The notes beneath the pieces were generated by a model, which saw only the letters and a program-made list of their open reading frames with translations, did no database searches and was not told where the DNA came from. A stretch of 64,000 nucleotides of DNA from Scyliorhinus canicula (lineage: Eukaryota), in contig NW_024055654.1 in NCBI RefSeq assembly GCF_902713615.1, positions 310,001-374,000 of the forward strand, given 5' to 3'. Position 1 is the first letter of the stretch. The number at the start of each line of letters is the position of its first letter. This document shows positions 7,924-27,024 of this stretch, piece by piece. The translations under genes and the position numbers were made by a program.

Positions 7924-8147
7924 TAATAATCGCTTATTGTCACGAGTAAGCTTCAATGAAGTTACTGTGAAAAGCCCCTAGTCGCCACATTCCGGTGCCT
8001 GTTCGGGGAGGCCGGTACGGGAATTGAACCCACGCCGCTGGCATTGTTCTGCATTACAAGCCAGCTGTTTAGCCCACTGTGCTAAACCAGTCCCTATGGC
8101 TGCTTGAGAGCGCTGTTGATGACCTCTTTCATCACTTTGCTAATAAT

Positions 8148-8522
8148 CAGGGCCGGCCCAAGGCACCGGCAACTCGGGCAGTCGCCCGGGGCGCCATGTG
8201 CTAGGGGGCGCCAGAGACTCGGGTCCCGCGCATGCGCAGTTGGGCCGGTGCCAACCAGCGCATGCGCGGTGGCCGCCCTCCCCAAGGGCGGCCCCCTCCG
8301 CCCCCCCCTTCCGACCGTCCCCCCCCTCGGGCCCGCCCCCCCCGCCTCAGGCCGGCCCGCCCCCCCCCGCCTCGAGCCGGCCCGCCCCCCCCGCCTCGAG
8401 CCGGCCCTGCCCCCCCTCGGCCCCTACCCCCTCCCGGCCCCTACACCCCCTGGCCCCGCCCCCCCCAAAGGGCGCCGAAGTTCAGCTTGCCCGGGGCGCC
8501 AGCAACCCTAGGGCCGGCGCTG
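8148..8522. mobile_element. Non-autonomous hAT-type MITE
   Basis: TIR CAGGGCCGGCCCAAGG vs CAGCGCCGGCCCTAGG (14/16); 8-bp TSD CTAATAAT (8140-8147) / CTGATAAT (8523-8530); splits a CR1 fragment. Confidence 0.8.
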
Positions 8523-8689
8523 CTGATAATGAAGGTTAGGCTAATGGAGGGGCGGGGGGGGGGGGGGGGGGGGGAAAGAGAGATAATTGTCCTGTTTCTT
8601 GAGTACAGGACAGGCCTGGGGAATTTCCCACATACAATGGGTTAACACTGCGACCTCAGCCACAAGACTCGATTTCTGGCTTGGGTTAT

Positions 8690-8900
8690 TGGGGGCGGGG
8701 CTGGGGTACAGGGGCCTGGGGGTTGAAGGGGCGGGGCCGGGGATTGGGGCCAGGGTGGCTGGGCTACAGGAGGCGGGGCTGAGGGTACAAGGGGCGGGGC
8801 TGGGGGTATTAGGGGCGGGGCGGGCTCTGGGGGCGGGCCTGAGGTTACAGGGGGCGGGGCCGGGCTCAGCGGGCGGCGCCAGCCCCAGGGGGCGGGGCCT
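8690..8900 (+). promoter_or_regulatory. Degenerate ~20-bp GC-box (GGGGCGGGG) repeat, likely CCNB1IP1 promoter
   Basis: Many Sp/KLF-type GC boxes immediately upstream of the start-codon repeats. Confidence 0.5.
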
Positions 8901-9648
8901 GCACACGCTATGGCGCTGTGAGAGGACTCCCTTCTCTTCAGCCTGCCCCGCTGCCGGGGGGCGGGACTGGGGGCGGGGCCGGGCTCAGTGGGTGGGGCCA
9001 GTCACAGCGAGCGGGGTGGGGCTGCGGTGGCGCTGTGGCGGGGTCTGGTTCCCGCCATGGCGCTGTGTGAGGACTCCCTCCTCTGTGACCTGCCCGGTTG
9101 CCTGGGGGCGGGGCGGGCTCAGTGGGCGGGGCCTGGTTCCCGCCATGGCGCTGTGTGAGGACTCGCTCCTCTGTGACCTGCCCGGCTGCCGGGGGGCGGG
9201 GCTGGGCTCAGTGTGCAGGGCAGGGGGCGGGGCCTGGTTCCCGCCATGGCGCTGTGTGAGGACTCGCTCCTCAGTAACCTGCCCGGCTGCCGGGGGGCGG
9301 GGCTGGGCTCAGTGCGCAGGGCCGGGGGCGGGGCCAGCCCCAGGAGGCGGCCGGGGGCGGGGTCTGTTTCCCGCCATGGCGCTGTGTGAGGACTCTCCTC
9401 TGTAACCTGCCCGGCTGCCGGGGGGCGGGGCTGGGCTCAGTGCGGGGGTCCGGTTGCGGGGCCAGACCCAGGAGACGGGGGCGGGGCCTGGTTCGCGCCA
9501 TGGTGCTGTGTGAGGACTCTCTCCTCTGTGACCTGCCCGGCTGCCGGGGGGCGGGGCTGGGCTCTGTGCGCAGGGCCGGGGGCGGGGCCTGGTTCCCGCC
9601 ATGGCGCTGTGTGAGGACTCCCTCCTCTGTAACCTGCCCGGCTGCCGC
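8890..9648 (+). repeat. Tandem copies (~90-150 bp) of the CCNB1IP1 GC-box + Kozak ATG + first ~15 codons
   Basis: ATG copies at 8910, 9057, 9145, 9246, 9376, 9500 and the true start at 9601. Confidence 0.92.
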
Positions 9649-9897
9649 TCCCGCCTGTCCGGCTTCGCCTGGGTCACCGCCTGTTCGCACGTGTTCTGTG
9701 ACCAGCACGGCAGCGGGCAGTTCAGCCGCTCCCCGGCCCTGTGCCCGGCCTGTGGCACCGCCCTGTCCGGCAAACGGGACATTGTCCGAACCGACCTCAA
9801 CCCGCCCGAGGACTACAAAGGCATGGTGCTGTCCGGCCTCCGGCCACACACCGTGCTGGAGATCGCCGGCCGGGCACTGGCCTTCTGGGGCTACCAG
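9601..9897 (+). CDS. CCNB1IP1: CCNB1IP1/HEI10 E3 ligase, coding exon 1 (RING domain, 99 aa)
   Basis: MALCEDSLLCN...AWVTACSHVFCDQHGSG.FSRSPA.CPAC...RALAFW.YQ matches the vertebrate HEI10 N-terminus; ligands C10,C15,C28,H30,C33,H36,C48,C51; donor CAG|GTCAGC, phase 0. Confidence 0.95.
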
Positions 9898-10400
9898 GTC
9901 AGCACCCAGCACCCACCCAGCACCCCGGGGTACCCCACCCAGTACCCTGGGGTGCCCAGCACCCATCCAGCACCCCGGGGTGCTGTCCGGCCTCTGGCCA
10001 CACACCGTGCTGGAGATCGCCGGCCGGGCACTGGCCTTCTGGGGCTACCAGGTCAGCACCCCGGAGTGGCCACACCCAGCACCCGGGGTGCTGTCCTTCC
10101 TCCGGCCACACACCATGCTGGAGATCGCTGGCCGGGCACTGGCCTTCTGGGGCTACCAGGTCAGCACCCCGGGGTGCCCCACCCACCCACCCAGCACCCC
10201 GGGGTGCCCCCCATCCAGCACCCCGGGGTGCTGTCCGGCCTCCGGCCACACACCGTGCTGGAGATCGCCAACCGGGCACTGGCCTTCTGGGGCTAACAGG
10301 TCAGCACCCCGGGGTGCCCCACCCCATCAGCACCCCGGGGTGCCCCTCCCACCCAGCACCCCAGGGTGCACCACACCCAACACCCCAGGGACCCCTCCCC
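9826..10400 (+). repeat. Tandem copies of the last ~24 codons and splice donor of CCNB1IP1 exon 1, with CAGCACCCCGGGGTG spacers
   Basis: Donor copies after 9897, 10051, 10159 and 10299. Confidence 0.92.
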
Positions 10401-10829
10401 CGTCTGCCCGTCGCAGGGTGCTGACGTCTCCCCGTCCTTGGGAGTCAATACCTCCCGCCCCACCCAACAACTCCCCTCGTGCCCCCCTCCCAGGCTACTG
10501 AACCCCTTCCTCCCCAAGCCCCTCCGCTCCCGCCCCCGATCACCCAATAACGGGGAGAGCGCAATTCGATTCTGTTTGTGTTACCGCAGGGGGGAACTGG
10601 ATGACAAAGGGGATGGATCAACGGTAGACAGCGGCACACGGTTTTGCCCCTGTGCCACCTAAAGCACTGGCCTCGGTCATGGGCACCCCCTCCCTGAGTT
10701 GTGGTATTGTTGGTGGGGGAGGTGGGGTGAGGAACGGATATAGGGCAGATTCACGACAGGCCGAGGTTCATACTCTCTCCGGTGTAGGAGAATAAACGAC
10801 AACCCAGAGGAGGAATCTAGTCCACGTCT

Positions 10830-12270
10830 ACTTTGTCAAAACCTTTTATCATCTTACACATGTCAATTAGATCTCCTCTGCTTCTTCTGAACTTGAGACA
10901 GTCTCAGCCTAAACTGCTCATAAGATAAACCCTTCATCTCTGCAATCAATCTAGTGAACCTCCTCTGTACTGCCTCTCACACAACTACATCCCTCCTCAA
11001 ATAAGGGGATCAAAACTGTACTCCAGATGCGGTCTCCCCAATGCCCTGTACAGTTGTAGCAACAACCCCCGACTTTTATACTCTATCCCTCAAGCTATTG
11101 TTATGGGCCAGGGTTTAGAGAACCCCAAAGTGTATCATGGAGTTCACCTGACCCACAACTTTTACTAGATTGTGGTATGAGGAGCACACAGCCCACTCCA
11201 CAGGTGAGGTACAGCAGAAATGGAAAAGTATTTTTTAAAGCAAAACAATGTTTATTCTATGAACTCACCTTTTTAAAACATACAGTGAACATCTTAGCAA
11301 CCATTAATTCAAATACAACCCCCAAAGAATACAACACTAAATAATCCTTTAAGCTTTCCATTTAACATCCATAAGACTTAAAACACCTTTTACCAGAAGC
11401 ACACCAGGTTAAAGTCACTACTGTTATTAGTTTTAAATCACCAGGATTGATTTACAGCCTTTAGATTACAGAGAGAGATTCATACCCCTTCTGTCTGCGA
11501 CTGCAGCTATCTAGCTCTGAAAGGGAAACTACAACACACCCTGCAGCAAACAACCTAAAATGAAAGTAAAAAGCTGACAGACAGCCCAGCTCCACCCACT
11601 CTCTGACATCACTGCAGTAGTAAAAACCCATTTCTTAAAGGTACTCTCACTACAGATATTTATAAACACACCCATTTATAAACACCCATTTTTTTTTTTA
11701 AATTTAGATTACCCAATTATTTTTTCTATTAAGGGGCAATTTAGCGTGGCCAATCCACCTACTCTGCACATTTTTGGGTTGTGGGGGCGAAACCCACGCA
11801 GACACGGGGAGAACGTGCAAACTCCACACGGACAGTGACCCAGAGCCAGGATCGAACCTGGGACCTCAGTGCCGTGAAGCGGTTGTGCTAACCACTAGGC
11901 CACCGTGCTGCCCTTAAAACACCCATTTTTTAAAGGTAGTCACTACAGATATTTATATATACACCCATTTATAAACACCCATTTCTTAAAGGTACTCTCA
12001 CTACAGATATTTGTATACACACCCATTAATCAACACCCATTTCTTAAAGGTACTCTCACATGACATTACAAAGGCTAGAATCCCACTTGCCTTCCATATT
12101 CCCTGCTGTACCGACGTGCTAATTTCCTGCGATTGATGCACGAGTACACCCAGATCCCTCTCCAACGAAACACTTTGAAGTGTCTCTGCATTGATAATAA
12201 ATTGCCTTTCCATCTTTCTGTCCAAAATGGATAACCTCATACTCATCCACGTGAAACTCCGTCTACCACA
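10830..12270 (-). mobile_element. CR1-like fragment interrupted by a solo-LTR-like insert
   Basis: Reverse-strand CR1 RT C-terminal motifs on both sides of 11099-12065. Confidence 0.65.
11099..12065. mobile_element. Solo-LTR-like element with internal 58-bp tandem repeat and a nested SINE (11690-11913, minus strand)
   Basis: TGTTAT...ATGACA termini; repeat ggtactctcactacagatattt...; SINE flanked by duplicated aaacacccatt; TSD of the outer element is imperfect. Confidence 0.6.
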
Positions 12271-13217: not shown

Positions 13218-13548
13218 ATCCACCAGGAGCGGATGTACCAGGAGTCCGCCTACAGCAAAGCGGAGGGCCGGCTGAAGCAGATGGACAAACTCTACACTCA
13301 GCAGCTGCAAGGCAAGGACATGGAGGTGAGCAACAGCCGCAGCGAGGTGTCCTCGCTCAAGAAGATGCTGGAGGAGTACAAGAAGAAGTACAGCGAGGTG
13401 TCGGAGAAGCTGATGGACAGGAACCGGCAGTACCAGAAGCTGCAAGGCTTCTACGACAGCCTGCGCCTGCGCAGCATGGCCATGGTGGGCGGGGGCGATG
13501 CCCCGGCGGCAGTGGGCCCCGCCGGAGCCCTGTACGGCATGCCTTTAG
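13218..13548 (+). CDS. CCNB1IP1: CCNB1IP1/HEI10 coding exon 2 (coiled-coil region)
   Basis: Acceptor ttctttcag|; IHQERMYQE...KAEG.LKQM.K.YTQQ...LEEYKKKYS..SEKLM.RNRQYQKLQG.YDSLRLR; donor TTAG|GTACGA, phase 1. Confidence 0.95.
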
Positions 13549-20265: not shown

Positions 20266-20483
20266 CAGGCAGGACCTCCCAGTTCGTTCCGATGGAGAAT
20301 CCCCTGAGGGAGGAGTCCTCCGAGGGTGACTTCCGCCTTCGGCCGTCCTTCTTTGGCTCGCCGGCGCCCGATGGCCCATGGGGCTTTTTCGGCTTCTCTC
20401 CAGGTGAAGACCGGGCTCCACATCATCACCAGCCTCAGGGCCCCAATCCAGGGCCCTCCAGCTCCTTCAAGATGAAGATGTAA
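20266..20483 (+). CDS. CCNB1IP1: CCNB1IP1/HEI10 last coding exon
   Basis: Acceptor tttgtttctcaccag|cag| (20266 or 20269, both in frame with the phase-1 donor); EGDFRLRPSFFGSP...FFGFSP...FKMKM* resembles the HEI10 C-terminus; total ~281 aa. Confidence 0.85.
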
Positions 20484-25750: not shown

Positions 25751-26620
25751 TTACTTGTGGCCTCGTTGGTGTCTCAGCAGGGAGGATGACTGAGTGAATC
25801 CCTTCCCACACTCCGAGCAGGCGAATGGCCGCTCTCTGGTGTGAACTCGCTGGTGTGTCTGTAGGTTAGACGACTGGGTGAATCCCTTCCCACACTTGGA
25901 GCAGGTGAATGGCCTCTCCCCAGTGTGAATTCGCTGGTGCTTCTGCAGGACGAATGAAGTGGTGAATCTCTTCCCACACTTGGAGCAAATGAACGGTCTC
26001 GTCCCAGCGTGAATTCGCTGATGTACAGTGAGGTGAGATGAGTGTCTGAACCCAGTCCCACAGTGAGAGCACCTGAATGGTCTCTCGTCAGTGTGAACAC
26101 GTTGATGGAGCATCTGTTCCCCAGAACTTTTAAAGCACTTCCCACAGTCTGGACATTGGAACGGTCTCTCCCCAGTGTGAATTCGCTGGTGTCTCAACAG
26201 GTGGGATGACTGAGTGAATCCCTTCCCACACTTGGAGCAGGTGAATCGTCTCTTCCCTGTGTGAATTCGCTGGTGTCTCAACAGGTGGGATGACTGAGTA
26301 AATCCCTTCCCACACTTGGAGCAGGTGAATGGTCTCTCCCCAGTGTGAATTCGTTGGTGTGTGGACAGAGTGGATGACTGAGTGAATCCCTTCCCACACT
26401 TGGAGCAGGTGAATGGTCTCTCCCCAGTGTGACTGCGTCGATGAATTTCCAGCTGGGATGGGGAAGTGAATCCTTTCCCACAGTCCACACATTTCCACGG
26501 TTTCTCCTCAGTGTGACTACATTTATGGCTTGTGAGGCCTGATGATCGAGCGAATCCTCGTCCACACACACAACACGTGTACGGTTTCTCCCCACTGTGA
26601 ACAATATTTTTTCCTTCCAT
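25751..26620 (-). CDS. C2H2 zinc-finger protein ZNF-A, 10 fingers (289 aa from ATG 26620)
   Basis: Open frame of tandem fingers; the ORF-track start at 26824 lies upstream of the acceptor tttcacag| (exon begins 26728), so MEGKNIVH is the likelier start. Confidence 0.88.
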
Positions 26621-27024
26621 GTTCAAAATCCGATGATATTCAAGATATGATAAATTGAGGACTCGGTCAGATCCTGATGTGATGCTTGGTTCGAGTTTCC
26701 AGACTTTGAAGCCTCCCCTTCGAACACCCTGTGAAACTGATTTAAAACAGAAAATAGGGAGTGAGAGACAACCCACAAAAACACAAAGGCAGGTTGTCAA
26801 ATTGAGCTGAATGAATCTCGTCATTTGTGGGGCCGGCTCTGGGAAAAAGTGACCATGAAAACTGCTTGATTGTCAGAAAAACCCACCTGGCCTCTTTGGG
26901 AGGAGAGAGAAAGAGGCGAAGAGGGATTTTGTATATCTACAAGATATATTAAGAGAGTAGTTGGCAAAGCAAATTTGATCTTGAGCTTCATAAACAGTAA
27001 TATTGAAACCAAAACTATGCTTCT

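Follow-up and report, generated by a model that had tools for sequence, protein, structure and literature searches.

The 64,000-nt window analysed here (Scyliorhinus canicula, assembly GCF_902713615.1, contig NW_024055654.1, positions 310,001 to 374,000 of the forward strand; all coordinates below are window positions) carries on its plus strand the gene for HEI10 and, running into its first coding exon, an array of tandem copies of the gene's own start-codon region. When spliced, coding exons 1 (9601-9897), 2 (13218-13548) and 3 (20266-20483, where the stop codon ends) give exactly the protein XP_038644165.1, annotated as 'CCNB1IP1-like isoform X1', and an alternative acceptor of exon 3 at 20269 leads to isoform X2. 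The coding sequence spans 10,883 nt of genomic DNA, the same as in the annotated gene on a 4.13-Mb unplaced scaffold of GCA_902713615.2. Exon 1, with 99 codons and the RING finger, is 73% identical to a mammalian HEI10, and the domain PF14634 (zf-RING_5) is recorded for XP_038644165.1. The gene is the S. canicula HEI10 (CCNB1IP1), as an initial annotation of the sequence had recognised.

Long ORFs for C2H2 zinc-finger proteins flank HEI10 on both sides (1109-2341 on the plus strand, 410 aa; 25751-26824 on the minus strand, 357 aa), fragments of a LINE reverse transcriptase lie at about 22.7-23.6 kb, and the head of a tRNA-like SINE at 7960-8090 stands immediately upstream of the CpG island. 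Within intron 1, an alternative first coding exon (11177-11203) encodes MRSTQPTPQ, followed by GT, and matches the N-terminus of isoform X3 (191 aa) from two paralogues.

Seven HEI10 start-codon cores were read directly from the sequence, with their ATGs at 8910, 9057, 9145, 9246, 9376, 9500 and 9601, the last of which is the true start. A 22-nt core around the ATG, allowing up to three mismatches, is found seven times (at 8908, 9055, 9143, 9244, 9374, 9498 and 9599) and was never found in 100 shuffles. The repeated unit is composed of a GC box, a Kozak-type ATG and about 15 codons, as the initial annotation had described it, and successive ATGs are 147, 88, 101, 130, 124 and 101 nt apart. TRF reports periods of 101 and 128 over the array (84-87% matches, scores 403 and 581), its GC content is 0.74-0.78, and the observed/expected ratio of CpG in the units is 0.5-0.66. 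Being built head-to-tail from GC-rich units in the size range of 10-150 nt, the array belongs to the minisatellite (VNTR) class.

The true start and five of the six upstream AUGs share the initiation context gccATGG. The exception is unit 1 (8910-9056), which reads gctATGG and, owing to a 1-nt deletion, stops after 3 codons; it is the oldest and a decayed copy. Unit 2 (9057-9144, 88 nt) opens an ORF of 33 codons whose stop ends at 9158, and unit 4 (9246-9375, 130 nt) one of 47 codons with a stop ending at 9389. Two units are in frame with the true start, namely unit 3 (9145-9245, 101 nt) and unit 5 (9376-9499, 124 nt), and both run into the stop that ends at 9405, the former after 86 codons and the latter, which has suffered a 2-nt deletion, after 9. 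Unit 6 (9500-9600, 101 nt), in which the start reads ATGGTG, lies in frame +1, with an ORF that extends over the true start; after splicing this ORF would comprise 151 codons and reach a stop in exon 2 at 13275, leaving 273 nt to the last exon junction. Unit 7, finally, is continuous with the remainder of coding exon 1. The contexts and stops first given for the six upstream ATGs proved exact in every case, and their stops and frames confirm that no upstream copy yields an N-terminal extension of HEI10. A database look-up found no record identical to the product of the unspliced exon 1 ORF or to that of the 86-codon upstream ORF, and no catshark transcript fragments were found among proteins of 54-173 aa.

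In all six upstream copies coding base +47 (…GGCTGCCG) is joined to a GC box (GGGGGGCGGGG) at one identical breakpoint, a junction that did not occur in the shuffles; since the breakpoint is common to the six, all of them descend from one founding duplication. According to the alignment of the units, their differences in spacing stem from GC-box sub-repeats lost or gained in the spacer. The core of unit 1 is the most diverged, differing from the other cores at 19-25 positions, and the cores of units 4 and 7 differ at only 4. Moreover, a block of 169 nt (9124-9292) recurs with 95% identity at 9479-9647, suggesting that two units were recently duplicated together. About two thirds of the core columns (~67%) are invariant across the units anyway, so the conservation of the ATG among them is not evidence of selection. 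An Rfam search of 8000-10700 gave no match, and the predicted RNA fold of units 6-7 was no better than that of shuffles (z = -1.08).

Upstream, the start-codon array is directly preceded by a GC-box minisatellite with a period of about 21 nt (8690-8900, plus strand), detected by TRF and in the repeat families, in which GGGGCGGGG recurs on the same strand at 8692, 8728, 8791, 8812, 8851 and 8889. Boxes of this type number 19 in 8000-10500, and the plus-strand form occurs 17 times within 8692-9579, in line with the earlier claim that GC boxes multiply together with the units. Further away, two perfect NRF1-type palindromes GCGCATGCGC at 8228 and 8258 (8228-8267) lie 1.34 kb upstream of the ATG at 9601; the palindrome has three matches in the window against 0.01 expected, these two being the only ones near the gene, and the pair is probably a remnant of the ancestral HEI10 promoter. 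The interval between these sites and the start consists of about 1.1-1.3 kb of tandem repeats, that is, C-rich units of 17/25 nt (8298-8466), a G run, the 21-nt GC-box array and the start-codon array. GC skew is positive from about 8450 through to 9650.

A second array covers the other end of exon 1. It contains four copies of the exon's 3' end with its splice donor (9808-10329, plus strand), the repeated piece comprising the donor and the 90 nt of exon 1 that precede it, and the donors stand after 9897, 10051, 10159 and 10299. As a result of the two arrays, the single-copy part of exon 1 is reduced to 9649-9807. Pseudo-exons of 81 nt, bounded by AG and GT and in phase with exon 1, are present at 9971-10051, which is open, and at 10219-10299, which carries a TAA.

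The start region was compared with that of three other elasmobranchs, zebra shark (L001), bamboo shark (L002) and thorny skate (L003). It is single copy in all three, indicating that the array arose on the catshark lineage, and the upstream AUGs, when assessed as uORFs by their conservation, are not conserved in zebra shark, bamboo shark or thorny skate. The homology shared by zebra shark and catshark sets in precisely at the ATG and extends 6 nt past the donor; the alignment of the two found no promoter homology. NRF1-type sites (GCGCNTGCGC or GCATGCGC) are present in each of the three species, 3-6 per species, between -40 and -262 of the single ATG (in zebra shark they lie at L001 2740-2956). 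Judged by these sequences, NRF1-type palindromes are a conserved feature of elasmobranch HEI10 promoters that in catshark appears to have been moved 1.34 kb away by the tandem repeats. In zebra shark and skate, minisatellites are found on both sides of exon 1 and end short of the exon; in catshark the repeats have overrun both of its ends. The skate minisatellite in intron 1 (L003 2314-3156) has a 20-nt unit GGGGGCTGGGGTACAGGACA, whose motif GGGGCTGGGGTACAGG also occurs in the catshark GC-box array at 8697-8712; this may reflect a common minisatellite family or a coincidence between G-rich repeats.

HEI10 is not a single-copy gene in this species. At least eight HEI10/CCNB1IP1-like loci are present in S. 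canicula, each on a different unplaced scaffold of 0.15-4.1 Mb, with proteins (P0154, P0279, P0273, P0277, P0276, P0271, P0151 and P0153) that are 84-100% identical to XP_038644165.1, or 96-100% if intact copies are considered. The copies carry distinct substitutions, for example Ser-Arg, Cys-Arg or Cys-Cys at residues 17-18, just past the repeat boundary, where the locus in the window has Ser17-Arg18. Some of them are damaged: P0153 has no exon 1, P0151 continues into intron 2, and P0271 is a diverged partial copy. In S. torazame there is an annotated HEI10 copy on a 330-Mb chromosome. A literature search on HEI10/CCNB1IP1 in sharks found nothing relevant, and the amplification of HEI10 in catshark is unreported in the literature found.

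The upstream AUGs can form a ladder of uORFs, as the initial annotation had proposed, only if the upstream units are in the mRNA. RNA evidence on this point was drawn from the shares of sampled 31-mers held by each sequencing run, the sample being about 1 in 10 words and identical for every run; the type of each run is a guess ('RNA?'), words are not assignable to one paralogue, and contigs drop rare or unstable transcripts. The observed shares were set beside a model in which exon 1 extends from a given start to 9897 and words common to the units are counted. For a start at 9601 this model gives a share of 0.27 of the words of 8880-9900 and 0.155 of those of 8600-10600; for 9580 the two shares are 0.33 and 0.18, for 9500 they are 0.43 and 0.24, for 9376 they are 0.56 and 0.30, and a transcript starting at 8910 would reach 0.97 and 0.51.

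In the seven small RNA-like runs X1, X2, X3, X6, X7, X8 and X12, drawn from four studies, the share of the 8880-9900 sampled words lies at 0.19-0.33. In X6, X7 and X8 the shares are 0.30, 0.26 and 0.27 of 8880-9900 and 0.16, 0.15 and 0.14 of 8600-10600; the number of words is equal in the two intervals, and therefore none is held in the intron or upstream. This pattern fits what is expected of spliced RNA that holds exon 1 only. The junction words are identical in four units, so mRNA from an upstream unit of any paralogue should also raise the share. The word shares thus suggest a transcript start at about 9575-9601, inside the last unit, in which case the ATG at 9601 would be the first AUG, with the qualification that shares of 0.33 and 0.43 are only about two standard deviations apart. 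The distant NRF1 sites and the positive GC skew from about 8450 count against a start in the last unit, because both would agree with transcription beginning ahead of the entire array. The share reaches 0.44 in X15, a run of unknown kind. In X1, X2 and X3 about 15-35 sampled words fall outside 8880-9900, most likely in the intron region at 9808-10329.

We favour, with a probability of roughly 55%, the explanation that the array is a young, lineage-specific promoter and start-codon minisatellite of which the last unit makes the stable mRNA. The minisatellite would have grown from the GC-box repeats of the HEI10 CpG-island promoter and would have expanded to include the short leader and, with the start codon, the first 47 bases of coding sequence, a single founding duplication having placed a promoter GC box directly after coding base +47. 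Unequal exchange or replication slippage may later have produced the six upstream copies, internal deletions the periods of 88-147 nt, and a recent single event the copy of the two-unit block.

As for function, only the last unit can make HEI10, because it alone is continuous with the rest of exon 1, and the stable mRNA would most likely begin there, with a leader of about 0-30 nt. The upstream units would act as extra promoter DNA, offering up to 17 same-strand GC boxes of the Sp1 type, and the ancestral NRF1 sites would have been pushed 1.3 kb off. A transcript begun further upstream would meet one to six strong AUGs. Usually, a stop lying more than 50-55 nt before the last exon junction marks an mRNA as a target of nonsense-mediated decay, and the position of the stop of the 9500 ORF would mark upstream-started transcripts in this way. 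Since the AUG at 9500 is out of frame over the true start and its stop lies in exon 2, such transcripts are predicted to give no HEI10 and to be degraded. They would behave as an on/off waste that is dead for HEI10, and no graded ladder would result. On present evidence, it is more probable that the decoy start codons arose as a side effect of minisatellite growth across the boundary between promoter and coding sequence.

The first alternative takes up the uORF ladder. Transcription would proceed from several units or from a point before the first, a considerable fraction of HEI10 mRNAs would carry one to six strong upstream AUGs, and the number of units would tune both translation and transcription. 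We regard this as possible but unlikely. The strong AUG contexts claimed for the ladder do exist, gccATGG having been kept in five of the six upstream copies; each unit holds GC boxes and possibly the ancestral start site, and both the NRF1 sites and the switch in GC skew lie upstream of the array. The word shares of the seven RNA-like runs, however, fit an exon 1 that begins at about 9575, the ORF at 9500 would nearly abolish translation of HEI10 rather than grade it, the ATGs are no more conserved than the ~67% of invariant columns predicts for young units, and the three other elasmobranchs have no ladder. The initial annotation had itself named transcription starts confined to the last unit as part of what would speak against it, and the word shares fit that part, indirect as this evidence is. 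Because the RNA evidence is indirect, the translational role of the ladder is disfavoured but not refuted.

A second alternative holds that the locus is a silent or redundant copy among the eight or more, that the array reflects neutral decay at the 5' end of that copy, and that the mRNA in the RNA-like runs comes from other copies. The dispersal of the loci over eight unplaced scaffolds and the clear damage of some of them would agree with this, as would exon 1 words that cannot be traced to one paralogue. Against it, the coding sequence at this locus is undamaged and yields precisely the annotated X1 and X2 proteins, and the CpG ratio of the units fits an unmethylated island; we therefore consider this reading quite improbable.

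It is very unlikely, in our opinion, that a non-coding first exon begins close to the NRF1 sites (about 8270-8535) and joins an acceptor lying within the array or ahead of it, with the choice of acceptor setting the number of upstream AUGs. The sequence does offer some material for such splicing: AAG|GTTAGG at 8535 is the only passable donor in 8200-9600, a good acceptor exists at 8940 in unit 1, and a weak tgcgcag|G stands 26 nt before the ATG at 9601 and recurs in other units. An exon boundary near 9575 would likewise agree with the start obtained from the word model. The acceptor near 9575, though, has almost no pyrimidine tract and failed a simple filter, and splicing to 8940 would place strong upstream AUGs in the mRNA, which the word shares contradict. 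That the array is an artefact, a simple repeat inflated by a long-read assembler in a GC-rich, repetitive region of an unplaced scaffold, is scarcely credible given that the units carry distinct substitutions and indels and that 0.46-0.56 of the 8880-9900 words are present in short-read DNA runs of two samples, far above the 0.27 of exon 1 alone, which supports the array outside the assembly.

The favoured minisatellite can be placed beside several known systems. The human TYMS gene has 28-bp repeats (TSER), a VNTR of the promoter and 5'UTR beside the start codon, whose copy number is variable and thought to modulate expression (PMC7712088). Like TSER, the catshark array lies in a CpG-island promoter immediately before the ATG and is made of GC-rich units, arranged head to tail, that each carry transcription-factor sites; unlike TSER, whose units have no start codon or coding sequence, the catshark units of 88-147 nt comprise a Kozak ATG and 47 coding bases. 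Promoter and 5' minisatellites are thus known, and what is new here is a unit that includes the start codon and coding bases.

The TISU element (AAGAUGG, versus RCCAUGG for the Kozak sequence) is a YY1 element at the start site of genes whose 5'UTRs are very short (PMC2518114, PMC3177215). The catshark gene resembles TISU genes in the ATGGCG at its start, in the palindromic core GCCATGGC and in a leader that is probably very short. In TISU, AAG precedes the AUG and GCGGC follows it, whereas the catshark flanks are GCC, of the Kozak type, and GCGCT; TISU was rejected on sequence, the catshark start being cgccATGGCGCT.

GCN4 and ATF4 are under translational control by multiple conserved uORFs in a mapped leader. 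If the catshark array is transcribed, it would likewise present several AUGs ahead of the main start and, as in ATF4, the last of them would overlap that start out of frame, but these AUGs are young duplicates of the main start, absent in three relatives and probably upstream of the main transcription start. The protocadherin and UGT1A genes have variable first exons, each with its own promoter and each ending in a splice donor. The catshark locus shares with them tandem units of promoter and start codon upstream of common exons and differs in that its units have no donor. A scan between 8600 and 9600 found no splice donor scoring at least 7 of 9, and alternative (variable) first exons were rejected, as units that lack a usable donor cannot join exon 2.

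Dosage effects of HEI10 are known in mice as well as in plants. The level of HEI10 sets crossover number and spacing in the species in which it has been tested, as in the coarsening model of Arabidopsis (PMC8333306) and upon HEI10 overexpression (PMC9556546). The catshark gene belongs to the same protein family, that of the RING E3 ligase CCNB1IP1/HEI10; the comparison differs in that dosage effects were shown in plants and the catshark gene exists in at least eight copies. The initial annotation had seen in the array a means of tuning a dosage-sensitive recombination gene. Its identification of the gene as HEI10 holds, and the dosage argument is weakened by the presence of at least eight near-identical HEI10 loci in the genome. 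One could go further and suppose that HEI10 has been amplified at least eightfold with a fast-evolving promoter and decoy-start array at each copy, so that HEI10 dose and crossover number would express a balance between amplification and attenuation in cis that varies between individuals; we consider this a long shot.

As an example of tandem repeats that have overrun an exon at both ends, the locus is a clear one. A repeat that multiplies HEI10's own promoter and start codon, in a genome where the gene itself exists in at least eight copies, would lend itself naturally to studying how the dose of a crossover factor evolves.
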